Part shown: piece after piece, positions 3,001-59,387 of the stretch
How the letters are laid out: each line of letters opens with the position of its first letter
How positions within the stretch are numbered: position 1 is the first letter of the stretch
Translations under genes and position numbers: made by a program
Assembly (NCBI GenBank): GCA_021613535.1
Contig: CP075494.1
Span: 7,502,001 to 7,566,000, forward strand
Origin: Adineta vaga
Lineage: Eukaryota; Animalia; Rotifera
Direction: 5' to 3'
Length of the DNA: 64,000 nucleotides
Notes under the pieces: model-generated
What the model was told of the DNA's origin: nothing
Database searches by the model: none
What the model saw: the letters and a program-made list of their open reading frames with translations, nothing else

Positions 3001-5882
3001 TTCTTTCTAATTACTTTAATCTATACAACTAAACCAAAACTTTGCATAGAATTAACCATTCATCTATCACAATTTTTAGTTCACCTGGTTCAAGAATGGA
3101 CAACCACTCGTCGCTGGTGATCGTTTCATCACCAAATATGACGTGGTTCCAAAGATACTCACTTTGGAAATTCTCAACGCTCAACCTGAAGATCAAGGTA
3201 CATATACAATTCAAGCAATAAATCCAGTCGGTAAAGATGAAACTAGTGCTAAACTCACTGTTCAACCATTGACAAACAATGATGTGCAAGCATTTGCTCA
3301 GCCAAAACCATTACAAGTTACTGCACCACAACCAACACAACAAGATATGCAACAACCACAACCACCGAAAGTGATTGTACCATTGGAAAATGTTGAAGCA
3401 CCAAAAGGATCACCAGTCCTTCTTCGAGCAACGATAACTGGCAAACCAACACCGACAGTAAGCTCATATGTGAATTGAGAAAGATCAATAAATTTTATGC
3501 TGCATTTAGTTCACATGGTTTAAAGATGGTAAACCACTAATTGCCTCGAATCGTCTTCGTACTCGATATGATGCTCCAACAAATCAAGTCGTGTTACAGA
3601 TTGATGAAGTTCGTCCAGAAGATGCAGGCCAATATCTTGTCGTGGCTACCAATCCATTCGGTGAAGATTCGACAGGCGGTTCAGTGAATTTGATACCTGA
3701 GAAAGGAGGTGATGACACAACAGGTGTTGTCCCGCAAAGTAAAACACCACGACCATTGAAAATTGTACCAGGAACCGACTTCCAACCAGTTAGCGCAACA
3801 CCAGAAGATAACAGACCACCACAAGTTATTGTTCCACTCAAAGATGGTACTATCAAAGAAACCATGCCTGCATTACTTACGGCAACAATCGATGCTGGTT
3901 CACCAATAGCAACAGTAAGAGTTCATGAAATCAGCCTATTTGAGATTAGGGATTTCAATAACGAATATTCTAGTAGTTTCTTTCTTCAATTTCTCTCTCC
4001 GTTATCTACTTTCTATGCAGAGAAGTAAATTATATATTTTCTTTTATTAGTTCACCTGGTTCAAGAATGGACAACCGCTTGTCGCTGGTGATCGTTTCAT
4101 TACCAAATATGATGTCATACCAAAGACACTCACATTGGAAATTCTCAACGCTCAACCTGAAGATCAAGGTATCTATACAGCTCAAGCAATAAATCCTGTT
4201 GGTAAAGATGAAACTAGTGCTAAACTCACTGTTCAACCATTGACAAACAATGATGTGCAAGCATTCGCTCAGCCAAAACCGTTACAAGTCACTGCACCAC
4301 AACCAACTCAACAAGATATGCAACAACCACAACCACCGAAAGTGATTGTACCATTGAAGAATATCGAAGTACCAAAAGGATCACCGGTGCTTCTTCGAGC
4401 AACGATAACTGGCAAACCAACGCCAACCGTAAGCTCATATGTCGATTGAAAGTATATATTTATCTTGTATATTTCGTATTTAGTTTACCTGGTTCAAAGA
4501 TGGTAAACCATTGATTGCCTCGAATCGTCATCGAACTCGATATGATGCTCCAACAAAACAAGTTCTCTTACAGATTGATGAAGTTCGACCTGAAGATGTT
4601 GGTCAATATCTTGTAGTAGCAACCAATCCATTCGGTGAAGATTCGACAGGCGGTTCAGTGAATTTGATACCTGAGAAAGGAGGTGATGATACTAGAGGTG
4701 TAGTACCACAAAATAAGATCAGGACAACCACAAGGTAAAACACCACGACCATTGAAAGTTGTTCCAGGTGTTGACTTTCAACCAACAGCTCCAACACCGT
4801 TTGAAAATCGACCACCACGTGTTATCGTACCGCTCAAGGATGGTACTATCAAACAAACCATGCCTGCTCTATTAACAGCAATGATTGATGGTGGTTCACC
4901 AATGGCTAAAGTAAGATATTGGAAACATCAATATTCATTCTTCTTTGTTATTTTTAGTTCACTTGGTTCAAAAACGGTCAACCACTTGTTGCAGATAATC
5001 GTTTTATTACCAAATATGATGTTAAACCAAAAATGGTGACTTTAGAAATTCTCAATGTCCGACCCGAAGATCAAGGAACATATACAGTTCAAGCAATAAA
5101 TCCTGTTGGCAAGATGAAACTAGTGCCAAACTCACTGTACAACCGTTAACTAACAATGATGTCAAGCGTTTGCTCAGCCAAAACCGTTGCAAGTCACTGC
5201 ACCACAACCAATTCAACAAGATATGCAACAACCACAACCACCGAAAGTGATTGTACCATTGAAGAATATCGAAGTACCAAAAGGATCACCGGTGCTTCTT
5301 CGAGCAACGATAATTGGAAACCAACACCGACAGTAAGCTCATATGTGACTTGAAAGTATGTATTTATCTTGTATATTTCGTATTCAGTTCACCTGGTTCA
5401 AAGATGGTAAACCATTGATTGCTTCTAATCGTCTTCGAACTCGATATGATGCTCCAACAAAACAAGTTCTCTTACAGATTGATGAAGTTCGACCTGAAGA
5501 TGTTGGTCAATATCTTGTAGTAGCCACTAATCCATTCGGTGAAGATTCGACAGGCGGTTCAGTGAATTTGATACCTGAGAAAGGAGGTGATGATACTAGA
5601 GGTGTAGTACCACAAGATAAGAATCGTGGATTAGGTAAACCACAAGGAAAAACACCGCGGCCATTGAAGATTGTACCAGGCGTTGATTTTCAACCAGATA
5701 TATCTCCAGATGAGAAGCGTAAATTGAAGCCTGTAACTCCTGTGACGAAACCAGAAAAAGCTATACCTGCAGAACAAATGCGACCACCACATGTTATCGT
5801 ACCATTGAAAGATAGTGATTTAGAAGAATTAATGCCTGTAATATTAACGGCAACTATTGATGCTGGCATACCAATTGCATCA
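1..5882 (+). repeat. Intragenic tandem array of a two-exon (A+B) Ig unit, about 6 copies visible
   Basis: A exons: 135-551, 1269-1685, 2220-2636, 3510-3914, 4484-4910, 5388-5882. B exons: 1-79 (partial), 826-1203, 1777-2154, 3080-3457, 4051-4428 (each 378 nt), 4958-5332 (375 nt). All introns are phase 0. Confidence 0.93.
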
Positions 5883-33616: not shown

Positions 33617-36405
33617 ATGTCATATCAACAGCCGCCACCATCGTAAGTTATTCTTCTTTTTAATTATTAAAATTATTCAGCTAGGAATGTTGTTATAATA
33701 AAGGAAAATATATTTGAGAGTAACATTGAAAGAGATTTTTAACTCTTATTAATATTTTAATTTATCATTTTAGTGGACCGAACAATCAATTACCACCATT
33801 TGGTAAGTTCTATTATTTTCTTTATTTTAAGAAACATTTCAATTTATTCTAGATTGGTCACTACCCGGTCGAAATTTTAATGGTGGAAACGGTGGTGGTC
33901 CTCCACCATTAATGGGACTTCCAAATCGAGTTAGTTTTCTTTCAAATTCTTCTAAGTAAACAATCATTTACTTTCTTTTCTTCTATAAATAGGATGACGT
34001 TCGATTACCATCCACTATGGAACGTGTTTTGAAATTTCGTGATAATCAACATGAAGAAGATCGTGTGACAAAATTACATAGTGGTGGTGGACATCAAACA
34101 GATTCTGGTATTGACCAAAATGATGAATATGATGATGATGATGATGATGATAATGATGATGAAGAAACAACTGGTCAAAATGGTCTCTCGCGAAAAGCAA
34201 AGAAAGAAATTGAAAAACGACGTCGACGTCGTGCTAAAAAGAAAACTAAACCAGTAACTTCTGCTACTACTACTATTGCTCCTGTTCCTTCACAACCAAC
34301 AAAATCTTCTGATCAATCTTCAAAAGATACTGACAGAAAGAAGAAAAAGAAACAAGACTCCGACGCTGATGCTGACCAAACAAATATTGAAATTGAATAT
34401 GTTCCAGAAGATCTGCCCGTTAAACGTGGCGATGGTTATTATTCTCATTTTGTCAAAGTATTTGAAAGTTTCAAATTAGATCCCAACGGTGATGAAAATG
34501 GTGAATATCATTATAATAAATATGGTAAAAAAGTTATGGGACCAAAAGTTCTTTTACCACGTGATAAAACAAATATCGATGAAAATGAAGACGACGACGA
34601 CGATGACAATGAAATGGCTGATAGCGATAAAAAGAAAGATGCCGATGATAACGAACAAAATAAGAAAAAATCAAAAAGACAACAAAAACGAGAAACACGT
34701 CTTAGTGTGGCACAATTAAAACAATTAGTTATTCGACCTGATGTAGTAGAAATGTTTGATGTAACTGCCAAAGATCCAAAATTACTTGTACATCTTAAAG
34801 TAAGTATTTCTGAAATATTCTTGAGTAACAACTCAATATTGTTGATCGTTACTATAAAATTTGAATTCTTTTTTTGTAGGCCACACGAAATACTGTTCCT
34901 GTTCCACGTCATTGGTGTGCCAAACGTAAATATTTACAAGGAAAACGTGGTATTGAAAAACCTCCATTTCAATTGCCTGATTTCATTCGTCGTACGGGTA
35001 TTATGGAAATGCGTGAAGCTTTACAAGAAAAAGAACAAAATAAAACTTTAAAACAAAAAATGCGTGAAAAAGTTCGTCCTAAACTAGGTAAAATTGATAT
35101 TGATTATCAAAAATTACATGATGCTTTCTTTCGTTGGCAAACAAAACCTCGTATGTCTATACATGGTGATTTATATTATGAAGGAAAGGAAAATGAAACA
35201 CGTTTGAAAGATAAAAAACCAGGTATTCTTAGTGAAGAATTACGTGTAGCACTTGGTATACCAGTTGGACCTACAGCAGATAAATATCCTCCACCATGGT
35301 TAATTGCTATGCAACGTTATGGACCACCACCAAGTTATCCGAATTTAAAAATTCCAGGCTTAAATGCACCTATTCCTGAAGGTTGTCAATTTGGTTATCA
35401 TAGTGGAGGTTGGGGTAAGCCACCTGTTGATGAACATGGTCGACCATTGTATGGTGATGTTTTTGGTACAAATCAATTTGCTTATATACGAAATATGACC
35501 GAAGAAGAACATGTGGAGAAAGGTTATTGGGGTGAAATTGAAGCAGAAGAACAAGAACAAGAAGCAGTTAGTTCATCCGATGAAGAAGAAACCAATGAAG
35601 ATACTGGTCTTGATAGTGAATTATCATCTGATGGACAAATGGCTGCACCAGCAGCAACAGAACATGCTCATCATCATGCACATCATCATCATGCTGCACC
35701 AGATCAAGAACAAAATATTCATCCAGCCGGTTTTCAAACACCACATGGTAGTGAAGGTTTTGCTACGCCAAGTGGTAAGTTAATTTTCTTTTCCAAAATA
35801 TATCTAATAGATTCAAACTTTTTTTCTCAGGTACACAATCATCAATACTCGGTGCAGAAACACCACAGCAGGTAAATATTTTATCCATTAGTTTCTTTTT
35901 TTTAAAAATATACATTGGTTCTATTTTCTTTAGTTTGAATTACGTAAATCTCGTTTTCATGCAGAAATGGATGGTGATACTACTCCCTCTCTGTATACTG
36001 TATTACCGGAGAAAAATGTTGGTGTCGGTCAATCGTCATTATTGTCGACTAATCGTGTTTATGATTTTCAAGCTATTAGTAGAACTCAAATGGGTCAAAC
36101 AGCAAGCGGTCGAACTGACGCATCTGGTGGTGTTGATATTGCTCTTAATCCGGATGAACTTGAAATGAATAGTCAAGCATTAGAAGCACGTTATCGTCAG
36201 GAATTAAAAGACAAAGAATTAGGAAAAGAAGATCTCAGTGATATGATTTCAGATCATTTAAATAAACAAAATAAGGTAGATTCTTTTCTATTCAAATAAA
36301 TACAATTTTCATTCATTTTATTTTTAGAAACGTAAAGGTAAACAAACAGATGCCAATGCCAAAGGTGGCAGTGCAGCTAAAAAACTCAAAGACTTCAAAT
36401 TTTGA
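33617..36405 (+). CDS. SF3B2: Splicing factor 3B subunit 2 (SAP145/CUS1)
   Basis: RLSVAQLKQLVIRPDVVEMFDVTAKDPKLLVHLKATRNTVPVPRHW; PSP domain PPPWLIAMQRYGPPPSYPNLKIPGLNAPIP; C-terminus KKLKDFKF*. The first micro-exons (33617 onward) are inferred from splice signals. Confidence 0.95.
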
Positions 36406-36486
36406 TTTGCCTGTTCTCTTGTGTTCGTTTTTTTCTTCTTTGTATAAATTGTGTTTTTTTCTGTTCTCATCAATAAAACAGTCATC

Positions 36487-37621
36487 TTATTGAAACCAAA
36501 GTTCAAAATGTACAGCACCTGTCATATCTTCAATACTAGTAGTTTGACGAATATTTCTTGCATATGCTCGACACATAATATTTAATAAAACATTTGATTC
36601 AACTTTTATAAATTGTGCCCAAATATATGGTTGTCGATAACCAGGTTGATTTAAAAATGGATAGAAATATATTGGAATACCACCGATAGCTTTATTACCT
36701 AAGATTGAAATATGATCGATTTGATGAACAAGATCTTGATCGGTTGGGTATTGTCCAAAACATTTAATTAAAACAAAATCTTTCATAGCGGGTTGCCATA
36801 AATCACGAATTTCTAGAGGAACTTCATCTTTCGATTGATAAGGTTCGGGTATCCAGCCAAAGACACGATTTAATTTAATAACTACACATGGACGACCTTT
36901 ATTATAACCGTAATTTTTTGGTTTAGAACATGGATTTGGACCAGGTTTAACATCAGTAAAGAAAAATATACATGAAAGACCTTGACGAAAATAAGTCATT
37001 AATACATCACGTGGTACACCAGCACAATCAATCATTTGTTGATGATATTGATCTTTAAGTCCATAACCAAGAACCCATTGATGAAGATTATCGACCAATT
37101 GAGCAACGGATTGATGTCCTGTTTTACGAGAAGTACGCCATTGAATTATAGAACGATCCATATAATATTGTGGTCGAAAACCCAGTCCTAGAAGATAAGA
37201 AAAAAAGAATTATATGCAATGAAAATGTACGTATGAATCAACCTGGATTAATTCCACCATCGAATGCTAAGGCACTTTCATTACCAAATCTTCTTGGTGT
37301 TTTCTTATCAAGTAATAGAATATATACAACAACCAAAGCAGAAAAGAGAGCACCTAAGACAAATAGAAAAACGGAAAAATAACAACCAAATTGTGCCCAT
37401 TCAAGTCCATCGCGCGCACAAAATCGTTTTGTCTTTCGATTCCATATATAATTTCGTATATTTGAGAGATAATCTAATTCCGTTAAAGGACTATGTTTGA
37501 TGAGAATATCATCGTTATTTGTTATCAATGGATACAATGGAGAACGAAGATTTGTTCTTGGACGAACAATATATGATTCAGGAGAATTGATAGTTTCGAA
37601 CCATTCTTCATCTGAATCCAT
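36487..37621 (-). CDS. Na+/K+-ATPase beta subunit (nervana-like)
   Basis: Exons 37621-37243 and 37187-36487. YIWN.....FCARDGLEW plus a single TM, PGLGFRP, YGYNKGRPCVVIKLNRVFGWIPEPY, YFYPFLNQPGYRQP. Confidence 0.9.
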
Positions 37622-38168
37622 TGATAAAATGTTTTAATTTGCGATGGCATCTCTGTTGTACGTTTACTCTTTCTTTACTATGATTATTGATGGTCCGAAA
37701 ACATCTTATCTCTTCTTTTTTGTCAGTTGTCTATTGATCATATTACATGTATGATCTTTTACCTTGCATATAGAACAGTAGTTTCTTCACCTTTACATTA
37801 AAAGAAAGAAAAAAAAATGTTTTATACATAATCAAATCTGACAGTAAAATAAATATCCAGACAATCAAGTTAATTGCCTGGAATTTTCATAGAAAATGTA
37901 ATTTTCTTTCGATAAACTTTTTGAAAATTATGATTTATCAATCGCCTTATGCAATCTACATAGATAAATAACATCAACAACATTCATTGCAATTGAAATA
38001 GATTTTCATTCCTTTTTCTTTCTTTCTTTCTCTCTTTCTTTCTTTCTTTGTCTGTCTCGGATTTCAAGAGCTAAACAAGTAACAATTTCAGCCACTTAAT
38101 CTACCGGTTCGTTCATCGTATGTGAATTCAATTATTTTTCAATCTTGAATTAAACTGACAGAGATACA

Positions 38169-40531: not shown

Positions 40532-43500
40532 ATGAATAGAATTCAAGTTTATATTTTTTTTCAACTTTTTAACATGGCTACTATGACACTTCTATATCCA
40601 TGTCAATATATTGATTCATCGGAATATATATTTAAGTGTGATTTATGTCAATGTTTATTCTCATCATCATCACGTTTTTGTCCAATAAAATTACCAATCA
40701 ATTGTATGAATGAATCTCATATTGAAATAATTCGTTTCAAACTTCATGATATGACTCGATCTTCAATACAATCAAAAACTCAACTTGAATTACATCATTT
40801 CAATGATAATATATCAACTTTAGAAGACATTTGTACGATAAAAAAATATTCGCAATTAACATTTTTCAATTCAATCGTTTCAAATTTACCCGAATGTTTC
40901 TCCATGATTTCATCCATATATTTCGTTCAATCCATTATTCATCAAAATACATTTTCATCGGAGATATTAATCTTCTATAATTCAACAATAGATTTTTTGG
41001 ATTTTAATTTAACTTCAACGAAACATTTAATTTTACATTCAGTTCAATTTTCACATAAACCATTTCAATTGAAATCTTTAGAAATCTTAACACATTTAAC
41101 AATTACAAATACTGAAGATTTCTATTTACTTGGTTCATATCCACATCTTTCCTATTTAAATTTCGATCATACAAAATTAACTGATAAACATCTAAATAAA
41201 ATATTTGCTCAAACAACAATACCTGATTTAACAACATTGATTCTATCAAATAATCATTTAACATCACTTACTCATCGTTTTCCTTCAACAATACGTTATT
41301 TAGATCTATCAAAAAATCAAATCAAATCTTTAGATTATTATTCTTTCAAATCACTTTATTCATTGAATATATTGAATTTAACTTACAATTCTCCATTAGA
41401 AATTCAACAAGATACATTTACACGTATACCTTATTTAGAAATACTTGATTTAAGTTATACATATCCAACATTACCATTTGAAGATCTATTTTTACCTTTA
41501 CAAAAACTTCGTCATTTAAACATATCGTCAAATTATCTTGATATTCTACCACATTTACCTATACCACATGATGCACATACAATTGAAAGTTATGATCAAC
41601 ATTTACCTGTTCTCTATGTTGATCTTTCGAATAATAATTTTGACAAAATTGATTTCGAAATATTTTCAACATCATCAACTCAAGATAAATATATTCTTTC
41701 ATTAAATATGAATTCAAATCATATAAAAACATTACAATTTTCATCAATCTTATTCAATGATACGAAACGACGTGGTCCATTCATTGAATTAGATTTAACA
41801 AATAATTCTTTAGAATGTGATTGTGATTTATATGAAAGTATTAGTCAATTATTACAAAACAATTCATCATTTCAGAAACAAAGTGCAGGAAATCGTACGT
41901 ATCTAAGATAGTTTTCGTGAATGATTTATTGCATTGCATAATTAGTCGAGTAGAAAATTTGAGAAGTCATTGTCATTGAAGAAAATTGAGATCTCATCTA
42001 CTGATTTCAATACATGACTTTGAGAGATTATATTACCGGAAATATATCGAGATTGGCATGCTCATTTTCTACGACGGAAGTCTAAATGAATTATATGCAG
42101 TCAATTGTGATAAATTACTGTTAGAAAGAAGGTCGATTGTATCGTAAATGATAAAGATTATGATTATTACTTAGAGATAGATGGTATTAATTCTGTATGA
42201 ACGATTGTCTAATTAGTTTGTCACTTTTCAAGTAGAATAAATGAGTAGAAGATGATCGATTTTATCTTATATTTAGCATCAATATTGTCACAATCTACTA
42301 AATTTTATTCGAATCGAATACGTCGTCAACAAAATCTTCTTACATCAACAAATAATCGTATAAAAATCTTACAATTATCGAATTTAACATGTCTCGATCT
42401 ACTTGATTCAACAATTCATCGATCAATCTACGAATTAAGTTCATCGAATAGTTTTTGTTCATATACAAAATCTTGTCCATCAACTTGTTCATGTTGTTTA
42501 ACAACTATTTCATCCAATGATTGTCATTGTTATTCTCAATGTCCAAATCATTGTTCATGTAAACATTCATTTGATCTTACACATAATTCAATCAACTGTT
42601 CAAATCGTCACTTAGATCAAATACCTTTCGATCTTCCTCATTCAATAACACATCTTTATTTAGATAATAATGAAATTAAATATCTCGATCAGAATTTAAC
42701 GTATCTAACACAATTAAAATCTCTTTCCTTAGCAAATAATTCTCTCGAATATCTATCGAATCATAACTTTTTTACAATGAATCGAATGGAAAATTTAGAT
42801 CTATCATCAAATCATATTAAACATATTGACTCGAAAACTTTCGCAAATATGATCAATCTCAAAAAACTTTACCTCCATCATAATGCATGGATACCAAATT
42901 TTTATCATCAAGAAAATATTTTTCAATCCAATATTCGTCTCGATCTTCTCACCTATGGGAATCGATTTACATGTAATCGTTCAACTATCTCTTCAATGAT
43001 TATCAACGAACGACCATTGACACCTGAAGATTGTTGTACAACAGATTTTAGTATTGAATCATGTGAGAAGAAGTTTCGTGTAGATAAATATAATCTTAAA
43101 CATGAAATGAGTTCAACATATTCAAAAACGTTATTACTATTATTATTTTATCAAAAATATATTCTCATTGGTTTAACTTTATTTCTATTTGTATTAATAT
43201 TTACAATAACATTTTATCTCAATCGAAAGAAACAACAGTTTCTAGCAAAAGAAAAACTTCTACTAAATACAGATCTTAAACAACAAACAAATCATTATCA
43301 TACAAAAGGTACATACAAATTTTCTTCATTCAATTTAATTCTTTGTTTAAATTTAGGAATGAAATATAATCAACATGAAAATGATAATTCAATTTCTTAT
43401 ACTGATGAAGATGAATATGCTTCCATACCTTTAACAACATCTCAAACAGATATAAGTTCAATAATTCATTCTCAGACAACGGTTCCTCCACTTCCACCTC

Positions 43501-44060
43501 GACGTCATTTTCTTTCAAATCGTCCGATTTCGCATTCATCAACTGTTTCAACATCCATAACAAATTCGTCCATAAAAAGTCCACATTCTTCATCTCTAAC
43601 AACAACTCATTCATGTTTACAAATTAAACTTGATGTTCTTGTTCTCTATTCAATAACAGATAGTAAATATGTTCATGAATACCTTAGTCAACAATTGGAA
43701 TATACGTATGGTAAACGATTTAGTTTCTATTTTATACATCGTGATCGAATGTTAGGTGAACTGGATTGGTTAATAGAAAATTCTTGTATAACAATATTGA
43801 TTCTACGTAAACCATATCATTTAATTCATGATTATATGAAAATTTTATCAACATATTCATCATTAAAATGTTTTATTATATTAATTAATCATGATCCAAA
43901 TCATCATTTAGTATCGATAAAAGCTCGAGAGAAAATTGCACGATTATATCGAACATCGGATATATATGAATGGAATTCAGATCTAAATTCCTTGATACAT
44001 GAACAATTGGATTTATTTCTTGAACAAAATTGTGGTTCAGCTACTTATGTCACTGATTGA
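40532..44060 (+). CDS. Toll-like receptor (multiple-cysteine-cluster type): signal peptide, LRRs, LRRCT, LRRNT, LRRs, TM, divergent TIR
   Basis: Exons 40532-41894 and 42277-44060, with a probable 48-nt intron at 43309-43356. LxxLxLxxN repeats; NNSLECDCDL; CPNHCSC...INCSNRHLDQIP; TM YILIGLTLFLFVLIFTITFYL. TIR-like boxes LDVLVLYS, FYFIHRDRMLG, IENSCITILIL, IYEW. Confidence 0.8.
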
Positions 44061-44168
44061 TATTTCAAATTTGAACGTTTTTTGCCGGTGCTGTCATAGT
44101 TTAGACATATGTTTTTTTCTTCTCCTTGTTCTGCTTGTTTGTATGTATATCTATGGTTTTCTATAAAA

Positions 44169-44200
44169 AAAAGAAAGAAAGAAAGAAAGAAAGAAAGAAA
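44169..44200 (+). repeat. (AAAG)n microsatellite between the TLR-like and TIR-SAM genes
   Basis: aaagaaagaaagaaagaaagaaagaaagaaa. Confidence 0.8.
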
Positions 44201-44610
44201 AGAAATTAATTTCGCTATTTTTAATTCAAAGTAAATATCATTAATCGGAATGGTTTCTTTTCCATACAAGCAAAATTGATTGTCAGTTATAAAAAGAAAA
44301 CTTAGAAAAATATTAGAATAAATTAACATATTAATGAATATTCTATTTGAAAACTTTAGTATTTATCTCCATTAGAACATGGATTTTCTTTCATAGAAGA
44401 AGAAGAAGTAAACTTGTCGACGATTAACAAACAACTTTAATGTGACACTTCACATCTTTCAACCTTCATGTCTGTATCAGAAGGCAAAATAAACTTACTA
44501 GACACTTGAATATACTGATGGATTCAATTAGAACTCTCTCTCTCTCTTTTTTGTATGTTTCTCTTCCATCAACCTGCGAGTCAATATGTACATAGAGATG
44601 AATTGAAATA

Positions 44611-47303
44611 ATGTCTGTTTGTTCTTTTTCGATCCATTCACATACGAATTGTTCTCTTGGCAATGATTGTCATTTGACATACGACGTGAAACAAAAAGAA
44701 ATGAATGAAATTCGTCAATTGTGTACCACATCTGCATCACCTGGCAAACATCTCGATGAAATTCTTGGACTTTTTCAAGCATGTCCACCACAATATCGTC
44801 TGCCATCATTATCACTTATTTGTCAATCAATATCTTGTATGTCGATTGAACAATTGGATATTAATATTATTAATCATCAATTGTTTTTTGTTATACGACA
44901 ATCTTCTGAACGTTTACTTCTATCATGGTTAACGAATGGATCATTAAATGGTCATGAATATCGAGCAATATTTTATATCTATCAATTATTTAAACTTTTA
45001 TCGGAATGGTTAATCGAACAAGATCAAATGATTGTGGATATGAAAACAAAAGAATTGATCAAACGAATTATAAAGAATCTTTTTCTTGATGAGAATTTTA
45101 TTGAAATCTTATGTCGAGTTATTCATCAATTGATTCATTATGAAAATGATGAACAACGTAGTACAATTAACAGTCCGATATTGGTAAGTTCTATGAAATT
45201 TCACTTTCCTTTCTTAAGATTTTATTTCTCTTTTTTGAAAAAGAATGATGAAAATCATGTTTCACCCGATGATATTCATCTACAAACTCATATATCAGAT
45301 ATTCAAGCTGAACAAACAGATATTCTCGATGTTTTGTTTCGTTGTGTGAATTCTTTAGTAGTTCTTTATACTCATCCAATTCTATTAAATAGTTCAATCG
45401 TCGATAAAAATCTTACACCTTGTATAATTAATTGTCTTAATACATCATTATTTCTTCAACTTGCCACAGATTTCTTACGTGAAAATATGACCAATGATCA
45501 AATCAATATTCAATCGATCTTTCTTATATTTACTTGTTTAGATTATTGTATTCTATCAGCGATTACCATGTCAACTTTACGATTACTTCCATCCATTCGT
45601 GATATCTTTCATATTTGGTCGGAAATTCCTCATACAGATATATCACCATTGATTATTCGTCTTATTCGTTTTCTTAATCAATTAACACTAGCTGATTCCG
45701 ATGCAATTATACGTGAAAATCTTTGTTCATATCTCCTATCATCTTTTGAAATTCTTTGTCAAACATCGAATTTAATTGATGAAATTGCGTCGATACTTGT
45801 TAAACTTTGTTCAACAAATCTTGGAAGAAAACATTTACGTCATTTAGGTTTTGTTCAATGTATTCTATATGGAACAAAACGTTATATACAATTATGGCGT
45901 CCATTAGCATTGTTAATAACATTACAAGATTTACATGAAACATCGTTTTTAAAACGATTAATTCATTTATTAATTCAACGAACTATTCATCTTTTTCAAT
46001 CATTAACAATAGAATCCAATGATACATCATTTGATTCGACATCACCATCATCAAAACATCAAGTAATAGAAATTACAATTGAATGGTTGATTTTATTACG
46101 TACGAATTTCTTAATCTTTTCTGTAATTGTCGATGGTTTAATTAATTCAACACGAAAAGTTAATTTCATTAATATTCTAATCGATACAATTCTATCGATT
46201 CAACAAGATGAAGATATTCATCCAAAATTAATCGATACTATGATTGAATTTCTATGGATTTTTGTTTTTAGTACAACAACAAATATTTCTGATAGTTTAC
46301 AAAAACGTACTGATTTGGGTCTATGGTTAAAAACGAATATGACAGATTCATTACCAAATATACGTTTAACATCACAAGGCATTCTTTCAACTTTAGATTT
46401 CAATAACAAAACTCTAAGTAAATCACATGCTTTTTCTCTCGAACATAATTTTATTCAAAAGAAATTCTAGATCGTTCAACTCTCAATCGTCGTTCTTCAA
46501 ATTCAACAAGTAATATCATTTGTATGATCAATGCAGATGATTCACATCGTGATTTATGTTTCACACTTCGTGATCGTTTGCAAATTGAACAACAATATTC
46601 TGTTGAACTTCTACAAACATCAACATGTCAATCAATCGAATCTGTTATTCAACTTCTTAATCGTTCATCTCTCGGTCTTTTCTGTGTCAATTCATCGATG
46701 AAAAGTGATAATCTATCGCATTTTATCTACCATTATATTTCATTTCAAACACATAAAATTCCTTTATTAACCATTCTTACTGAACAAGATTGTGAATTGA
46801 ATGGAAATTGGTTAGAGAATATTCCAATAGTTGATAAACAATCGATTCTAAAACAAATTCGACGATATTTAAATCAGAATGATGAAAGTTATCTTCATCC
46901 GACAAGTCATTTAAGTGACATACATAATCAATCAGGAAATTATTCTCAACGTCCAATATCTTACTGGACAGCAGATGATGTGACACAATGGTGCGAAGCA
47001 ACACCAGGTAATTTCGAAACATTACGACCATTAGTCAAACGTTTGAATGGTCCTGGACTTGTTCATCTTGCGGAAATTTTATCCATTGAACCAGCATCGA
47101 TGTATCATAGTTTAAATAGTGAATTAATTCAACGAACAGGTGCCAATGTTCCATTAACAGATTATGTTTCCTTACGAAGTGAATTACAACGATTATTAAT
47201 TCAAAAACATAATGAACATATTCCGCAAAATCCTCTTAATAATAAAACGAATAAACCAAAGAAGAGAAGATGGAAACGAAGTCGTTTTTGTACGATAATT
47301 TAA
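44611..47303 (+). CDS. Helical (ARM-like) + degenerate TIR + SAM-like protein with a C-terminal polybasic CaaX motif
   Basis: Exons 44611-45183, 45244-46417, 46471-47303. Leu-rich helical N-terminal two-thirds. TIR_2-like ICMINADDSHRDLCFTLRDRL...LNRSSLGLFCVNSSMK...KIPLLTIL...GNWL. SAM-like ISYWTADDVTQWC...LNGPGLVHL. Ends KPKKRRWKRSRFCTII*. Confidence 0.68.
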
Positions 47304-50300: not shown

Positions 50301-50560
50301 ATATATATATATATATATAGGAGGCAAAAAAATCCAAGGAGCAAGAGAATAAAGAGAAAATAGAAGATGACTCGGGGGAAATAAGCAATGTGTCATGATG
50401 AAAAAAAAAGAAAATCTTCGTCGATGTCTTCTCTACGTTGTTAAATAAATACTTTCCAAGGAAGATCGACGCGTTAACTTGATTACAGTTAACTGCATAT
50501 CTGTTTTGCTACTATTTTTATCAAAAATATCAACTTCTTTCTTTTCTTTTAGAGCCAAGT

Positions 50561-52307
50561 ATGACAAAATTATCCTTTGTAATTTTCTTTACGCTATTAA
50601 TACACATTAATGATGCATACGTGAATACAACGGATGAATTATCATTTATGTTTAATTCAACTAGTTCCAATCGAACAGTATTAACTTCTCAAGTGTTAAG
50701 ACAACCGACACGACAAGCAACATATCTCGGTGCAATACTTGCATTTGTTTTTATTTTCTTTGGTCTGATTGGAAATATTCTTCTTATAACAACAATACTC
50801 TCTGTGAAGAAACTTCGAATAAATATTATCAATATTTTCATCGTTTCGGTAAGATATCATTCGTAGACATCTTGGCAAACGATTTGAATCAGCTCTTGTT
50901 TTTTTTTATACAAAAGTTATATCTGTATGTTTATATATATATACATCCAACACTTCCGTTTCTTCTTCGTCGTCTTCAATAGAAGTAATCAGAATGAAGT
51001 CAGCATACCGGAAATCATTTTCATATCTAATAGTACGATCATGTACCTTGATAACAACGCATCATAATACGAGTCATGTTATGAATTGAATAGAAATTTT
51101 TTGACGATAGAAAATCTGTTTTGTATTTGCTTGAATAAATAGAAGAGAGTATATCGAGAGATAGGAACTGTTGAGCTTACTTTTTTTCCGCATTTTATAA
51201 TGATTTAATCAACCAGAAAAAAAGCTTTTATTTCCGTTTTTTTTGTAAGAGAAGAAAAAGGAAAGATTTTTTATATCAGATGATAAAACTGTGGAATTAG
51301 CTTAAAAGATTTCACTTAACCAAACTAAAATTAGTCTTTCCGATTGATTTCGAATGTGATAATTATGTTTTCTTTTCTAGTTGCAATTCAATGATTTACT
51401 TAATATTGGTTTCAATCAACTTTTTGTTGGACTTTCCTATGCAAATCATCATTGGGTTGGTGGCCCGTTGATTTGCAAATTAGTTGTCTATTTTTCAACT
51501 GTTTGCATGGGTTGTCTTCTTTGGCATCATTGTCTAATTGCTATACATCGATTAATTGTTGTTGTTTATCCATCTCTATTACGTCGTATGTCTGTCAAAA
51601 CTTATGTGATTGTTTCACTTGTCATTACTCGAATTTTGCCGATTATTTGTTGTATTCCATCATTTGCAACTTATTCAATTGAATATTCACCTCAAGCATT
51701 ACGATGTTCCATAAGAAATAAAGTACAAATATTTATTAATTTAACTGTTTTAATCATTTTACCCAATGTGATTATTATTTTTTGTTTTCTGGGCATTTTC
51801 TTTCATGTTTATCATGCATCATATTCAAGTGGAAGAACAAATACACCTTCAACATCTGTTTCACATTCATTAAGACGTGAAATACGTATTACAAAGATGT
51901 TTGCCGTTTTATTCACATTATTCTTTCTTGGCTATCATCCCTATGGATTCATACGTGCGTATGATAAACGTCGTCAATTACATCCGGATATATTTGTTTT
52001 ATTAACACTACTCTATTGTATATCAATATGTGCCTCACCATTTGTCTACGGAATAATGAATAATCAACTACGTCATGAATGTATGCGAGTGATTTTTAAT
52101 TGTTGGCATTGTCAAAAAATTGATGATTATAGAAAATATTCACATGGTCGATTAAATTCAACGGTAACAACCGCATTAACCGTTGTTAATGATGGAGGTG
52201 ATGATGGTCGAGCTAGTCCATCAACAGCATCAATGTATGAATTATCGTGTAAAACCATACGAAAAAAGACTTCAAGTGTATCAAGATTTGATACTGCTCA
52301 TATTTAA
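50561..52307 (+). CDS. Rhodopsin-like (class A) GPCR, Tre1/Moody/melatonin-receptor-like
   Basis: Exons 50561-50848 and 51381-52307. Signal peptide; TM1 GLIGN; NIFIVSLQFNDLL; LIAIHRL (DRY position); REIRITKMF; SPFVYGIMN. Confidence 0.85.
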
Positions 52308-54455
52308 ATAAATTTTGTTTGTTTGTTTGTTTGTGTTTCTATTTTATATAAATATCGATGAAATGACGTTCCGGAATATTTTATATCAAATCTTTTCTTG
52401 TTTTATTTTCTAAATGATGATGCTGAAATGATTTGCAAAGCATATAAACCAAGATCGAATTAGAACAAACCAATAAGTTTATTCCGATATTAATCCAATC
52501 AGAGCTTCATATTCCCAAAGCATCATCAACTGTAAACATTGAAGCTTAGCGATGATTCAATCATGTTAGTTTAAACGATAGAAACTTATAAATTTCCTTT
52601 ACATTATTTTTTACATTAGTATCTACAATAACCACATTGATGCTATTTTTATAACTATACAATCTGAAAACAGATGAATCCTTGCATGTTCGTGATAAAA
52701 ACTTGATCTGAAATGGTTTGAATAGTAGTGTTAGTAGTAGAGTAGTTCTTCTCTATCAACAGATACTTGCTTAAGTCATATATTTGTTCAAAATAAACTA
52801 TTATCCCCAGAAGCGCATTGAAGAAGAGAAGTTGAATAGAACAATAATAATGTTTCGTGTCTTTATGAATTACTGTAACCAGTCATTTAAAAGAAAAAGA
52901 TTTCTTTTCCATTGCATGATACAAGAACTCACTTTATATTTCAGCTCATTTTCACAGTTATATAAGAAGTAATTCACAAAATGTTCTTCATTTCTTTTGT
53001 AATACTTTAATGTAATTGACAGTTCCATCAGCATCATCATCATCATTTTCAAACTAATTTATTTGTTTTATATATCAATCAACTAGATCTTTTTTTTTAT
53101 AAGTATATATGATAATCAAAATCATGATTAGAATACTCTCCATTAGTCTTTATTTCTCCTAGAACAACGTTTCTCTATTAACGATCGAGCTCATCAAGAA
53201 TATATTAAATAGCTTTTGTTCAAGATGAACAAGGACAAAAACTTCAATTGTTAAGTAAGAATCGGCATGTTGTTTGAAGACGAAATCTATTCCAGTCATT
53301 TTGACATTGAATATAATTTATCATCATGACCAACTATGCATCAATTTTCATAGATTCAAACAATGCTTGCACTTCGTATAATTAAAATTCATTGCCAAAG
53401 GCGAAGTGCCAAATTTGCATATCCAACTTATTAACCACGTATTAAAGATCAGAAGCAAATGCTTTGCACCAATTATCACTGTTTATTCTGCCGTATAGAA
53501 TACGAAATTAGATATGTACGTTGAACATTGATAGTGAAAGATGTATCGAATGATTTTTGATCTTCTATGTTGTTTAAAGATTTATGACTTTTTTGTCTAT
53601 GAATATATTTTTATGACAATGTTGTTATACAGTTCGATGTTTAGTTTTATAGTCCTATCAGAATTATGAAAAATCATTTGCTTGAATGATGTAAACGGTC
53701 AAACAAAAGAAAAAAAAGTCCAACTTTCGTTTATTAATTCTACTTTTCTTTTCGATCGCATTGTCTAATACAAGGCTAACGTATTGCGTAAAGTTTATTT
53801 ATTTCTATGAAGAAGTTGACTTAACTTATCTCTCACACTCAATCACATCTATTAAGTAAATATGATTTATTAATATTGATTGAATAGATAATTTGTTTCA
53901 ATTAATTTATATTCGTATACCGAATACATTATTCTTGTACGATATAATTCAGTTAAGAAGTGTATATATTCGATTGAGTAACGATTACATCATCATCTTT
54001 GAACATAAGTAGAGAACAAATTTCGTTTCGTTCGTTATAATATTGACCTTATTCGAACACTTCTTGTCATTGAACTTCTTGCTAAGTCAGAATGTGACCG
54101 ATGGGATTGATCACATTCCAATCGAACATATGCAATCGATTAATTAACAATTATTCTCTCCAAGATGAAAAGGTTATGTTGATGGATATTAATTGTATAG
54201 AATAGAGACAATACATATATGTATTGATGTTCGATTTTATGAAAAAAAAGAAAATGGATGAAGAGAAGAGAAGAGAAGAGAAATAAAAGTAGGCGAGATG
54301 GAGAGTAAAAGAGATTAGAATACCACAAAGTGGTGCATACTATTTGTTGTCAGGGTGAACGAACAAATAAGATTGATTATAAGAAGAGTCGGTCAATACT
54401 TCTCTTCTCTCCTCTCCTTCTCTCGACAGAAACACTTTCTTCTTGACATATAACT

Positions 54456-55551
54456 ATGATCTCAATGGAATTTTGCCTCCTAATTATTTTGATTTTATCC
54501 ATTTTTATCGTTAATATTTCTCATATATTATATTTAATTTTACGTCGAAACGATCAACGACTTCGATTTTATCGTTCAATATTATTAAATATTTCTTTTT
54601 CATCAATGATTATTTCGATTTGGCTTATACCTTTCTTTTATTTTCGTTTGATTTGGTCACCGGAATCATTTCCATGGCGTTTATGGTCATTTATTTTTCA
54701 TCTAGTTGATGCTGTTCAACTTTATTCATTTCTTCTTCTCATTTCAAATCATAATTTTATCAATCTTTCTCTTCAACGTTTTCTCATTTTTCTTTGTTGG
54801 TTTGCACCTACTCTCACCTATTCTCCATTATTATGGTTATCAATTTCGAATGATAAATTTGATTATTTACCATATCGTCGTTTATCTACAAATGTTCCAT
54901 GGTGGATATTACCGACGATCTATTCTTGTATGTATCTTGTACCAATATTTATATCATTTGTTTTAATTGGAATGGGAATATGTTGGCCATGGATATATAA
55001 ACAATATAAACAACGAGAAAATGCTTTACAAGGACAAATAAATGAACATCGAGAGAATATGGCAGAATTGACTAGTTTAGTAGAAACAGTTTTAAGTTTT
55101 GAATTAGATCCATCAACATCAGGAACAATTAATGTAAGTTATTTGTAAGTGTTTGTTTCTAGATTTGATTATTGTTGATTTTTAGACATGGATTCCTTCG
55201 ATATCTTCATTATCCAATCCATCAACATCAACTAAAGATCAATCATCTTTATCGTATCTTTCTAATAAATTCAATGGTTCATTATCATGTAAAGTTTCTC
55301 AAGATCATTCTTCTCTTCTATCGGATGATCTTTCATCATCATTACAATTCAAAACTTATCTATCCAAACCACATTCATCTGTATATTATTGTTTATTATT
55401 TCTTATCACAGGTTTATTATTTCTCGTTCACTTTCCATATGTACTGTTTTCATTGATGGATATTTATACATCTCAATTACCAAGATTTATTTATATACAT
55501 TGGTTCGGAACAATGTTTATACCAATTATACATTTACAAAAAAATCACTAA
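54456..55551 (+). CDS. Highly divergent 7TM rhodopsin-like receptor
   Basis: Exons 54456-55133 and 55186-55551. Seven hydrophobic segments with class A remnants: N in TM1, LLNIS in TM2, W...P in TM4, P in TM5, HFPY in TM6, P in TM7. Confidence 0.62.
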
Positions 55552-56766
55552 TACTTTCTCCAATTCATTTCATTTGCTGCATATTGTTGCGTATTTTGTT
55601 TAGCTACATCAGGATTAAATTGAGAATTATATCGTCGTTTACGTTCGTCGATTTCGATTCGTGCTGGTTCACGTGCTGGTTCAGGTGTATCAGGTGTTGA
55701 ATCACTACCAGTAAAAACTCGTGATAAATAAGCAGCAGTTTTTGTACGTTCTTGTGATTCCCGTTTTAATCTAAATAGAGATTTAATAGAGATAAAAGAT
55801 GAAAATATTTTATCAATGTACCGTTCAGCTCGAAGTTGTTCAATACGAGAAGTTGAAGAAGTTGAAGTTGAGAATGAAGTAGATTTTTTTGTCGAAGTAG
55901 TTGAAGAAGATTTGGTTTCATCGTCACGTTTACGTTTTAAATCATCGACATATTTGGACATGTGATTAAGTGGATCTTGTTTGTGAATACGTAAACGATC
56001 ACGTTCTTCTCTATAATATAACATTTATTTTCACACGTAAGTTTCAATGCAGAGAAAAAGGGATTTACTGGTTCTGTTTATGAATAGAAAACACTCTTAT
56101 AAGTATTGTCCAATACTACAGAACGATTATTCTTTCTATTTTAAGAAGCTTACCGGTCTGTTCTAGATACTTCTTTTGTATCTGTTGGTTTGTTACCACT
56201 TCGTTCCAAATACCATGGAACATTTCCTAGATAAATTTTTGAATAAATTCAATATCATTTAGCCTATCTCTCTTACCTTTACTCTCAACAATGCTACCAC
56301 CAAGATAAGTTAACAAACCAATTTTTTTCTCGAATTCTTCCGTCTCTGCTTTTTTCTCTTTTTCATGTTCAGCATTAGTTGCATCAGTCGTTTTTAACTA
56401 TACATATCAATAAAACATAAAGTATTCATTGTACTTTCAACCATACATACTCCTTGTTCTTCAAGTTGAAAGAGATTCACATGTTCTTTTGGTTGCTGTG
56501 TTGCTGATGATTCATTTGGACCTTGAAACTGAATCAATTGATCGCCACGTTTTGCTCGTAAATGATTTAGACGATCTTCTTGTTCCTTTAAAAAAAGATC
56601 AAATTCATTCTTAAAAATAAATATATCTTCATCGAGCACTTACAGCAAGAGTTTTCCTTCGAAGTGCTTTTGCTTCTTCGTCAGCAGCTTTCTTTTCATC
56701 ACGTAAAACTCGAGCAATGTTATCCTTATTTCTAACATGCCAACGTTTCTTCGGTAAAATATTCAT
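55548..56766 (-). CDS. LENG1: Leukocyte receptor cluster member 1 homolog (CIR_N domain)
   Basis: N-terminus [24 protein letters not shown]; HVNLF; LLTYLG; PWY; [12 protein letters not shown]; YNSQFNPD. Confidence 0.9.
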
Positions 56767-56942
56767 ATCTAGAAAGATCATAGAAGCGAAATAATATATA
56801 TTCTTTTTTTTCTATAATGTAAATACAGTTATTGAATAAGAGCGATCTTAATTCTTACTACTAATTAATAAAGAATGAATGAAATGAATAAGCATCACAA
56901 CGAAGAAGATTAAGAAATAATGTTTATTTTTTTTTGTGTTGA

Positions 56943-59387
56943 TCAAGATGTTTGTGGAGATAATGGATCTTGTTTATCATCGAATTCAGTTTGTTCACTA
57001 TCATGTATAGATTCATCAGTGCCAAGACTTAATTGTGTTTTACGTAAATTCCAATGAAGAATATCAGCTAATGATTCAAACCAATCTCCTAATTGATCAA
57101 ATCGACAAATTGAAGGTACAGGATAAACACTTGTAGTGATGCGAACACTAGAGAAATATGATCCATAGATGAAGACGAGCGATTTTCATCTACTTTACCT
57201 GTCTTGTTGTTGAAGTTCATGGCGATTTCGTCCATCAACTGACAGCCAAGCTGTAAGACGAGTATCTTCTGACACTTTAACTTTTAATTCAATACCAGCA
57301 GGTACAACGATAGGTCGAAATGATAGAGAGTGTGGACAAATAGGACATATAACCATAGCAGGAACATTAGGATGAACCATTGAAGAGCCAGCTAAACGAA
57401 ACAGTTTCCTTTTGATATAGAAATGATATAAAACATACCAGCCATGGCATAAGCTGTAGAACCAGTTGGAGTTGATAGAATTAAACCTAAAAATTAAAAA
57501 AAAGTATTTAATTTAAAGGAAAAGCAAAATGAAATGAAGTGTTTGAATATACGAATGAGAATTTGAATCTTCACTATAGATGTGAGGGGTAGGCAATACA
57601 TAGAAGACATCGCAGACCTTGACAAATATTTCTTTAAACGACAAATTTAGTATATATACGATTAATCTAATCAAAAATAAATCTCATTTGTCTTATCTGC
57701 TATCTGTATTTTAGATTATATAAAATAGTCTTAAGTTAAAAACATACTATCTTACCATCGCCTTGAACTTTCGTAATAAATCTATCATTGATATACAAAT
57801 CCAAATTGGATAAATATGAATTTGGTCCTCGATCAATTACAACTTCATTCAATGCTAAATGAGAGATTTTCTCATCTTTATGTGTTTGTTGATCTTTTTC
57901 ATCTTTTGATGTATCATCCGATGATATTGAATGGAATGATGCGTCGGATGATGATTTCTTCTTTAAACCATCTTTCACAATCGAACATTTTAAACGTGTA
58001 CGTAAGAGAACAGCAACATTGCCGGATATAACTTCATTTAAAATTTTATCATGATATTTGAAATCGAATGGTGTTAAAAAACCCAATGATCCCATAGCAA
58101 ACGATAAAACTGGCGGGCAACTTCGTTGAAATATACTTGAAGCATGTAAAAGTGTGCCATCACCACCCAAACAAATGATTAGATCAATTTTTGCTATATC
58201 ATTGTCTAGAATTCAATTGATTAAAAACAAAGAGATGAATTTCGTCAAAATATACCGTGATCAAAAGCAAGACATCGTTCAGCATGTTCTTTCAATTCAG
58301 CATCATTAGCAAATGGAAGATGCATATGTTCAGAAAATTCAATATAAACATGAAGACGTCGCTAAATCATAGAAATTGCTTTCTGTTAGCCTTGAGGTTT
58401 CTTTGTTTATTTCATACCTTCAGAAGTTTTACAATTATTTGTCGAAATTCTTGCATTGTTTGTGGTCCAGGTTTACGTATGATAAGAATATTATTCGGTG
58501 GCGATATCCAATGTAATCGTTGACTTGATGGATCTTGTATAACACTAATGATTAGAAAAAAAGAATTGATAATGGAATTTGAAAGAAAAATAAAAACGAA
58601 CATGAGTTGATCATTGTTTTGTATTTTTTTCAATGTTGCTTTGGGTCCGAAATTTGATTTTGGTGATGGAGCAAATGCTGAACGAGCAGCCTAAATTAAA
58701 TGAAATAACAATAAAGAATTAAGAGAATTATATACAATGATTAATTAATGAATTTAAAAAAATTAAAAAAGCGATTAGTTTTTATAGACATTACCTCATT
58801 TTACTATTATCGACTGACATCGAGATTGATCGTCTCGAAAATGAGGTAGGAAATGATGGTGGTGATGATGTCATTATTTTAGTTAAAGAAATTTCGCGCC
58901 AAAGACAGGTATAAGTATTTAAATGTACAAAGGCACGTCGATAGAAGAACATATTTTCACGCACATAGAGAAAAAATTATGATAAATTTATGTATAGAAA
59001 GAAAAACACAGCAATATGATAAAATATATCTTTTTTTTATCTATAATAAAAAGCACATTTATAAAGGGTTAGTTCTGTCATAGAATAATTGTATAAGGTT
59101 ATACTAATGACTATGAAAACGTTTTAGTTAAGAGTAACAATAGAGAAACTAACCAGCATGTTTTCGCAGTTGGTCGATTAACAATGTGGTAGTGGAGCAC
59201 AGACATAACCATTATCATCACATTTTGTTATGTACTGATTATAATCTGTGACTGTACTGGTCGTGGATGTTTCCGATTCATCATCTGTAGCCGATTGTAA
59301 TGGAGAATCACCAACACTAACAGATCGTCGTTGAAAACTAAGGTTTCGTGATGGTGGTGATAGTTCCTTATTATCAAGATCAGTCAT
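56943..59387 (-). CDS. NADK: NAD kinase; 5' exon structure uncertain
   Basis: FGPKA...IQDPSSQRLHW; GGDGTLL; LALNEVVIDRGP; VQGDG..LSTPTGSTAY; MVHPNVPAMVICPICPHSLSFRPIVVP; LHWNLRK. Stop at 56945-56943. Confidence 0.92.

Follow-up and report, generated by a model that had tools for sequence, protein, structure and literature searches.

Toll-like receptors (TLRs) of the protostome, multiple-cysteine-cluster (P) type carry a signal peptide, two blocks of leucine-rich repeats (LRRs) split by an LRRCT-LRRNT pair, one transmembrane helix and a C-terminal TIR fold with boxes 1 and 2. A survey of metazoan TLRs records none in Adineta vaga, a bdelloid rotifer, citing the 2013 genome paper, and none in Rotaria tardigrada (PMC8609888). 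Among other TIR proteins, SARM1, dSarm and TIR-1 are NADases with the domain order ARM-SAM-SAM-TIR, and ARM-TIR proteins have been catalogued in invertebrates such as Aplysia (PMC9334734) and occur in corals too. The adaptors TIRAP/Mal and TRAM combine a membrane-targeting signal (binding of phosphatidylinositol 4,5-bisphosphate, PIP2, or myristoylation) with a non-catalytic TIR and have proven receptor contacts. Here we analyse a stretch of 64,000 nt from A. vaga chromosome piece C5 (G000:C5:7502001-7566000; 28-31% G+C), called the window below and the frame for all coordinates given without a contig name. In it, a gene with the layout of a P-type receptor (gene 1, 40532-44060) is followed on the same + strand by a neighbour (gene 2, 44701-47303) that, like SARM1, combines helical repeats, a SAM-type and a TIR-type domain.

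We consider it probable that these are two separate genes whose adjacency is inherited block synteny: gene 1 a cryptic bdelloid TLR, and gene 2 a membrane-anchored, non-catalytic member of a TIR/SAM-like family that would be a scaffold or regulator of TIR signalling. An initial annotation, made from the DNA sequence, had described two co-oriented genes about 550 nt apart, and the spacing is as it said, with 551 nt between the gene 1 stop codon and the annotated gene 2 ATG (44611) and 641 nt to the ATG that is conserved among relatives (44701). The queries of the sequence searches were the individual exons and two public models, P0001 and P0039. In word searches, the long open reading frames (ORFs) of the two genes returned the A. 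vaga models I4U23_024288 (P0001, gene 2) and I4U23_024287 (P0039, gene 1) at 97% identity, the other 3% being due to gene-model differences, along with homologues in Adineta ricciae, A. steineri, several Rotaria species and Didymodactylos carnosus. Given that the ORFs run to 540-620 codons in DNA of 28% G+C and have dozens of conserved homologues, they are not chance ORFs.

Architecture of gene 1 and its C-terminal domain

Gene 1 is a complete multiple-cysteine-cluster Toll-like receptor encoded by three exons on the + strand. Exon 1 (40532..41882), delimited from the ORF and Pfam matches, holds the start codon, a hydrophobic N-terminus that is a probable signal peptide, the first LRR block and a CDCD cysteine motif of LRRCT type. 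It is followed by intron 1 (41883..42276; GT..AG, phase 1), which was read from the sequence and whose exact donor is uncertain. Exon 2 (42277..43310) encodes an LRRNT (~42537-42638), the second LRR block, a cysteine cluster, the transmembrane helix (~43152-43223) and the start of a linker. Beyond intron 2 (43311..43358; 48 nt, GT..AG), placed by mapping the P0039 protein on the window, exon 3 (43359..44060) completes this Ser/Thr/Pro-rich linker and encodes the cryptic TIR (~43626-44042) up to the stop codon.

Both large exons lie within one polypeptide in the orthologues P0040 (965 residues), P0048 (970 residues) and P0052 (959 residues), and 40532-44060 is therefore a single gene; its start codon aligns with residue 1 (Met) of P0048. 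The NCBI model I4U23_024287 (P0039) starts at 42252 and is truncated, omitting exon 1 with its 450 residues. The exon that the public annotation leaves out is included in the A. ricciae orthologue and in two other sequences. This truncated annotation, together with the cryptic nature of the TIR, may be the reason why gene 1 was overlooked.

Pfam LRR_8 matches exon 1 at an expectation value (E) of 3e-14 and exon 2 at E 4e-16, and LRRNT matches exon 2 at E 1.6e-4. The LRRNT lies past the internal cysteine cluster, which is the multiple-cysteine-cluster layout. In a 19-residue window, the sole hydropathy peak above 1.8 covers residues 285-315 of the exon 2 translation, giving one transmembrane segment. 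These matches, with the TIR fold described below, bear out the order proposed at the outset, namely LRR ectodomain, transmembrane segment and divergent TIR.

Conservation is highest over the last ~160 residues, with 72% identity between the A. vaga paralogues as opposed to 54% for the ectodomain, and the C-terminal domain is 57-86% identical across 18 bdelloid sequences. Pfam TIR and TIR_2, searched up to E 10, found no match in any of the 18 bdelloid orthologues; likewise, the profile of the domain had no match among PDB sequences, and genome-wide scans with TIR and TIR_2 gave no signal at the locus. An AlphaFold2 model built from the 18-sequence alignment (mean predicted local distance difference test, pLDDT, of 80) contains five beta-alpha units. 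Its best Foldseek matches were the TIRs of TLR5, TLR10, TLR2, TLR1 and TLR15 along with plant and bacterial TIRs, at E 5e-5 to 1e-3 and 16-21% identity. The Foldseek comparison that had been suggested as a check on this domain thus came out in favour of a TIR fold, with TLR TIRs at the top.

In the VIA geometry comparison, the TIR of RRS1 was the best match to the model (Z 11.8), and Ras-like and receiver domains followed within one unit, so that the fold alone is not decisive. Profile alignment with hhalign against a small set of aligned TLR TIRs from fish and oyster gave E 0.0018 over 63 columns and was in register over boxes 1 and 2. It pairs LDVLVLYS with YDAFVSY (box 1), HRDRMLG with HRDFxPG (box 2) and IENSCITILIL with the segment from alphaB to betaC. 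Against the TIR_2 relatives introduced below, the same method gave E 0.097. Considering its LRR-transmembrane context, we read the modelled domain as a genuine but drifted TIR.

Set beside P-type Tolls and TLRs, gene 1 thus shares the whole series of elements from signal peptide to boxes 1 and 2. It differs from them in a TIR that Pfam does not detect in the 18 orthologues, in a box 2 whose Pro is replaced (RDRMLG) and in the length of the Ser/Thr/Pro-rich linker, ~135 residues, between the membrane helix and the TIR. Unlike the wider P-type Tolls, the gene 1 family was found solely in bdelloid rotifers and in rotifer-like metagenome contigs.

Gene 2 and the rotifer TIR/SAM-like family

Gene 2 belongs, as a divergent branch, to a large rotifer TIR_2/SAM-like family; several members of the family have ARM repeats, and many end in a CaaX box. 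The public protein P0001, mapped on the window, covers 44611-45183, 45244-46417 and 46471-47303 on the + strand. In the family alignment of 13, all other members start at MNEIRQLC, which corresponds to position 44701; the 13 full-length relatives have a mean column identity of 69%. Counted from this conserved ATG rather than from the annotated one, exons 1 and 2 (44701..46417, with an intron at 45184-45243) encode an N-terminal domain of helical repeats that are probably ARM-like. Intron 2 (46418..46470; 53 nt, GT..AG, phase 1) is indicated by the frame change and by the annotated protein, which agree.

The N-terminus, a domain of 555 residues, gave no Pfam Arm match, and its helical-domain profile found nothing among PDB sequences. 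Its language-model neighbours are ARM/HEAT families (UNC45-central, V-ATPase H, Arm, RICTOR_N and Ric8, at 0.90-0.92), while those of the whole protein are rotifer TIR_2 proteins, mollusc ARM-TIR proteins and SARM1 (SARM1 clusters at 0.88-0.89). The last ~100 residues of the helical region align to the region before the TIR in relatives, some of which have Pfam Arm matches. From these comparisons, the gene 2 N-terminus is probably ARM-like.

The next domain (46509..46883) has a flavodoxin-like beta-alpha-beta arrangement. Pfam found nothing above threshold on gene 2, TIR_2 included, and gave sub-threshold matches to SAM_Ste50p and SAM_PNT in 6 and 4 of the 13 members, respectively. The AlphaFold2 model of the last 275 residues, with an overall pLDDT of 61 and ~70-83 in the folded parts, places a four-stranded beta-alpha-beta domain, with four beta-alpha units at pLDDT ~70-80, before a five-helix bundle. 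For the alpha/beta domain, VIA returned TIRs (RPS4/RRS1 Z 7.5, TRIF 7.3, IL-1RAcPb 7.2) tied with B12-binding, MID and receiver domains. Foldseek on the C-terminal model had no match at E <= 0.001, and bacterial TIRs were interspersed among top rows of CbiG, PurE and receiver domains. The nearest shape in the ESM-Atlas was a rotifer TIR_2 cluster, at a template-modelling (TM) score of only 0.38. By fold alone, the modelled domain is inseparable from other flavodoxin-like domains.

Profile homology is more telling. When the profile built from the 13 proteins was run against 1.84 billion representatives, the matches below E 1e-10 were bdelloid orthologues and their fragments only; the proteins of a weaker tail (E 5e-8 to 8e-4) came from rotifers (Rotaria, Didymodactylos) and corals (Orbicella). 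The stretch aligned in these tail proteins includes Pfam TIR_2 (E 1e-18 to 1e-25) and the C-terminus, and two of them have ARM repeats upstream. The hhalign comparison of the gene 2 domain with an alignment of the relatives' TIR_2 domains gave E 5e-5 and 67% probability over 98 columns, from betaA to betaD. On the strength of the profile search and of this alignment, we take the domain to be TIR-derived. Its profile found at most one match, at E 0.27, among PDB sequences, and hhalign against TLR TIRs gave E 0.38. Foldseek, which had been proposed as the check for this domain as well, was thus uninformative here, but the TIR origin that it was meant to examine stands on homology instead.

The Glu of the S-E-A motif of the relatives is Ile or Val in all 13 members of the gene 2 family, and Ile in the window. 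Its column aligns with the Glu of WC..E in Cat1 and TLR15 (both PDB matches), which we take to be the catalytic position of the NADase TIRs of SARM1 and plants. The TIR-derived domain is very probably devoid of NAD+ hydrolase activity, as judged from this substitution, and the name pseudo-TIR under which it had been described is a fair one.

The SAM-like domain of the initial annotation corresponds to the five helices encoded at 46956..47213 (model residues 166-242). VIA matched the predicted bundle to the SAM domains of CNK/HYP and Aveugle, both at Z 6.7. The domain also aligns convincingly with the C-terminal domain of canonical TIR_2 relatives (alignment A8), with the motifs W..DV, NG..L, MY.SL and LPI..Y conserved, so that model, geometry and homology all agree with the earlier call.

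The polybasic stretch and CTII tail, likewise noted at the outset, were confirmed at 47250..47303 by reading from the sequence up to the stop codon. The CaaX Cys is invariant in the 13 full-length relatives, and 24 of the 26 family members that include the C-terminus have a CaaX box in which X is I, L, F or M. A final residue of this kind favours geranylgeranylation and, with a basic patch, plasma-membrane targeting. The gene 2 protein is thus predicted to be prenylated, probably geranylgeranylated.

CaaX boxes are also found in the TIR_2 relatives P0127, P0128, P0130, P0132 and P0150, and the endings seen among such relatives are CTLI, CTIL, CNAM, CNLM and CTLT. The A. vaga genome has at least 100 TIR_2 matches and at least 44 loci with this SAM-like domain, most of them directly 3′ of a TIR_2 match. 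Since both the CaaX box and the order TIR then SAM-like are common among rotifer TIR proteins, neither is unique to gene 2. Two things appear particular to gene 2 and its orthologues among the sequences compared: their TIR has drifted and lacks the Glu, and a polybasic run stands ahead of the CaaX box. Examples of the SAM-like loci are C5:11689865-11758462, C4:8963415-8964116 and C5:1990222-1990959, and a tandem cluster of ~8 genes lies at C5:11.69-11.76 Mb.

Death-TIR proteins, candidates for conventional adaptors, are encoded at no fewer than five A. vaga loci. At one locus (L022, G000:C4:5679501-5685500), the ORFs 2163-2699, 2759-2965 and 3043-3489 encode a Death-like region and then an intron-split TIR_2; a Ser-rich ORF downstream ends in CSIL and may be part of another prenylated TIR protein.

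Comparison with described systems helps to place gene 2. It shares its building blocks (helical repeats, SAM and TIR) with SARM1, dSarm and TIR-1, but its order is helical repeats, TIR and one SAM-like domain, the catalytic Glu is replaced by Ile or Val and the protein ends in a polybasic CaaX tail; it is not their orthologue. With invertebrate ARM-TIR proteins and the rotifer TIR_2/SAM-like/CaaX family it has homology from the end of the helical domain through the TIR to the SAM-like domain, and several of these proteins also end in CaaX, whereas the branch of gene 2 and its orthologues is long and confined to bdelloids, its TIR escapes Pfam and lacks the Glu, and the polybasic run precedes its CaaX box. 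The likeness to TIRAP/Mal and TRAM, a membrane-targeting signal joined to a non-catalytic TIR, is one of function only, since these adaptors have no sequence relationship to gene 2 and no ARM or SAM domain. The comparison with SARM1 and lipid-anchored sorting adaptors, drawn when the locus was first described, is therefore apt as an analogy.

Conservation of the gene pair and its neighbourhood

The adjacency of genes 1 and 2 is old. On the C2 paralogon, the receptor paralogue lies immediately 5′ of the gene 2 paralogue and on the same strand. The pair is also adjacent in Rotaria sp. Silwood1 (L012) and, for the other paralogue group, in Rotaria socialis (L014), as well as on a metagenomic contig (L016) whose gene 2 is only 45% identical.

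The surrounding genes have been kept in the same way. By tblastn, the window is colinear with L016 gene for gene from 34.0 to 58.7 kb, a block of ~25 kb of unrelated genes with the order SF3B2-like gene (DUF382/PSP), Na/K-ATPase beta, receptor, gene 2, 7tm_1 G protein-coupled receptor (GPCR), further ORFs and NAD kinase. C2 preserves this order all the way from the receptor to the NAD kinase-like gene, and L012, which is shorter, preserves receptor, gene 2 and GPCR. As the flanking, unrelated genes are equally conserved in order, the conservation of the pair is no greater than that of its neighbours. The flanking genes at 33993-37633 and 50483-58690 of the window take their names solely from Pfam labels given to homologues on L012 and L016, and they include two ORF groups without a name.

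In Didymodactylos carnosus the pair is not adjacent. Next after the receptor orthologue comes the SF3B2-like gene, on the opposite strand, while Na/K-ATPase beta precedes the gene 2 orthologue and nothing similar to the receptor lies in the 5 kb that separate these two. This order, seen on two contigs (L020 and L017), fits an inversion of the segment with Na/K-ATPase beta and the receptor. Synteny across related genomes had been named as a check on the pair, and its outcome is divided: the linkage is kept on C2, in Rotaria and on L016, but so is the whole flanking block, and in D. carnosus the linkage is broken.

One Rotaria contig has a 5′-truncated copy of gene 2 and no receptor within 13 kb. 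There (L023:10001-15554, Rotaria sp. Silwood1), the model P0023 joins a Pellino FHA fragment of 60 residues to a copy of gene 2 that lacks the first ~200 residues, probably a rearranged or decaying duplicate. We considered the Pellino domain as a mark of a Toll-pathway cluster and rejected it, as it is a short fragment joined to a truncated copy by the gene model.

Genome-wide, an LRR_8 match occurs within 10 kb of a TIR/SAM locus only at this pair and at its paralogue, and the notion of a general rule that places LRR receptors beside TIR/SAM-like genes was discarded. By our own arithmetic, from ~70 LRR_8 loci and ~100 TIR/SAM loci in 100.8 Mb, about 1.4 such proximities within 10 kb are expected by chance. 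The initial caution that the adjacency might be accidental, TIR genes being numerous in such genomes, was well placed in view of the TIR_2 matches counted above.

The spacer between the two genes (44061..44700, no strand assigned) has an AATAAA ~260 nt past the gene 1 stop codon and an (AAGA)n microsatellite at 44165-44200, and the ORF list has only low-complexity ORFs in it on either strand. An AATAAA in this 640-nt spacer is compatible with separate transcripts for gene 1 and gene 2.

Coupling of the two genes and what they mean

In the reading that we favour, of two separate genes within an inherited block, the gene 1 product would be a type I membrane receptor that presumably signals by TIR-TIR assembly. 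The gene 2 protein would be prenylated, probably geranylgeranylated, and so sit on the inner leaflet of a membrane, where it could oligomerise through its SAM-like domain and act as a non-enzymatic scaffold or regulator of TIR signalling. Among its targets might be the neighbouring receptor or catalytically competent paralogues of its own. Some observations weigh against treating the two genes as independent. The neighbour of gene 1 is the most divergent, non-catalytic and polybasic member of its family, as a dedicated adaptor might look, and both TIR-type domains are under strong purifying selection within bdelloids (mean column identity 75% in alignment A4 and 67% in alignment A3). Furthermore, by our estimate from ~100 TIR loci in 100.8 Mb, the chance that this one receptor would have a TIR-superfamily gene as its immediate neighbour is ~1-2%, which is suggestive but was picked out after the fact.

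A rival hypothesis is that of a true two-gene Toll module, in which prenylated gene 2 would be the dedicated membrane adaptor of the receptor, recruited by heterotypic TIR-TIR contact, multimerised through its SAM-like domain and replacing adaptors of the TIRAP/TRAM type. We hold it to be unlikely. The genes are adjacent and co-oriented here, on C2, in two Rotaria paralogue groups and on L016; both products are predicted to be membrane-bound and have TIR-type domains that are conserved although divergent; gene 2 resembles adaptors in its loss of the catalytic Glu and is alone in its family in having a polybasic stretch before the CaaX box. Toll receptors and SARM-type proteins can be functionally linked, as are Toll-6 and dSarm in Drosophila and SARM1 and TRIF in mammals. 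However, the unrelated flanking genes are as conserved in order as the pair, which is split in D. carnosus, one Rotaria copy of gene 2 has no receptor beside it, and the Death-TIR proteins could serve as adaptors in its place. Direct comparison of the two TIR profiles with hhalign gave nothing specific (E 0.038 over 25 columns), so that profile comparisons demonstrate neither a shared origin nor a co-divergence of the two domains. A complex prediction for them scored 0.00; it left the alignments unused and had no controls, and we count it neither for nor against binding.

Two of the initial proposals accordingly find no backing here. The suggested co-divergence of TIR surfaces is not reflected in the profiles, which have no special similarity, and nothing specific supports a linked receptor/adaptor pair, given the equally kept flanking order, the split in Didymodactylos, a prenyl anchor that is common among rotifer TIR proteins and the other candidate adaptors. 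A bolder form of the module would have bdelloids keep one cryptic TLR lineage that signals through its neighbour, a geranylgeranylated, catalytically dead, SARM-like sorting adaptor of helical repeats, TIR and SAM, the two making up an independently evolved and genomically linked pair; this we regard as a shade more doubtful still.

Gene 2 may instead act within its own family only, as a dead subunit that joins active TIR/SAM-like NADase paralogues by way of the SAM-like domain and tunes them as a decoy or brake, independently of any receptor. Pseudoenzyme paralogues that regulate active ones are common, most of the loci that share the SAM-like domain have it beside a canonical TIR_2 with the Glu, and this domain is the part of gene 2 best conserved with respect to distant relatives. 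The polybasic CaaX tail, on the other hand, is unlike the tails of those relatives and suggests a different membrane address, and we think such a purely internal role improbable. It is also conceivable that gene 1 is not an immune Toll in function but an LRR receptor for development or adhesion, with a degenerate TIR that has ceased to signal, the neighbour then being irrelevant. A TIR below every profile threshold and an unusually long linker would agree with this, and many protostome Tolls act in development (PMC8609888). Yet no part of the protein is more conserved than the cytoplasmic domain, whether between the A. vaga paralogues or across bdelloids, which argues for a retained function of that domain and makes such an explanation very improbable.

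The more solid novelty of the locus lies in its parts: a receptor in a lineage recorded as TLR-less, and a dead-TIR, polybasic-CaaX branch of the rotifer TIR_2/SAM-like family. Gene 1 would correct the record of TLR loss in bdelloids (PMC8609888), and its case would illustrate that domain-profile surveys are able to create false losses. The gene 2 branch is a natural pseudoenzyme in a SARM-like world and could tell how TIR NADases become scaffolds. If the two products do interact, they would form a receptor-adaptor pair that is compact and genetically tractable, in an animal noted for its desiccation tolerance and its uptake of foreign genes.

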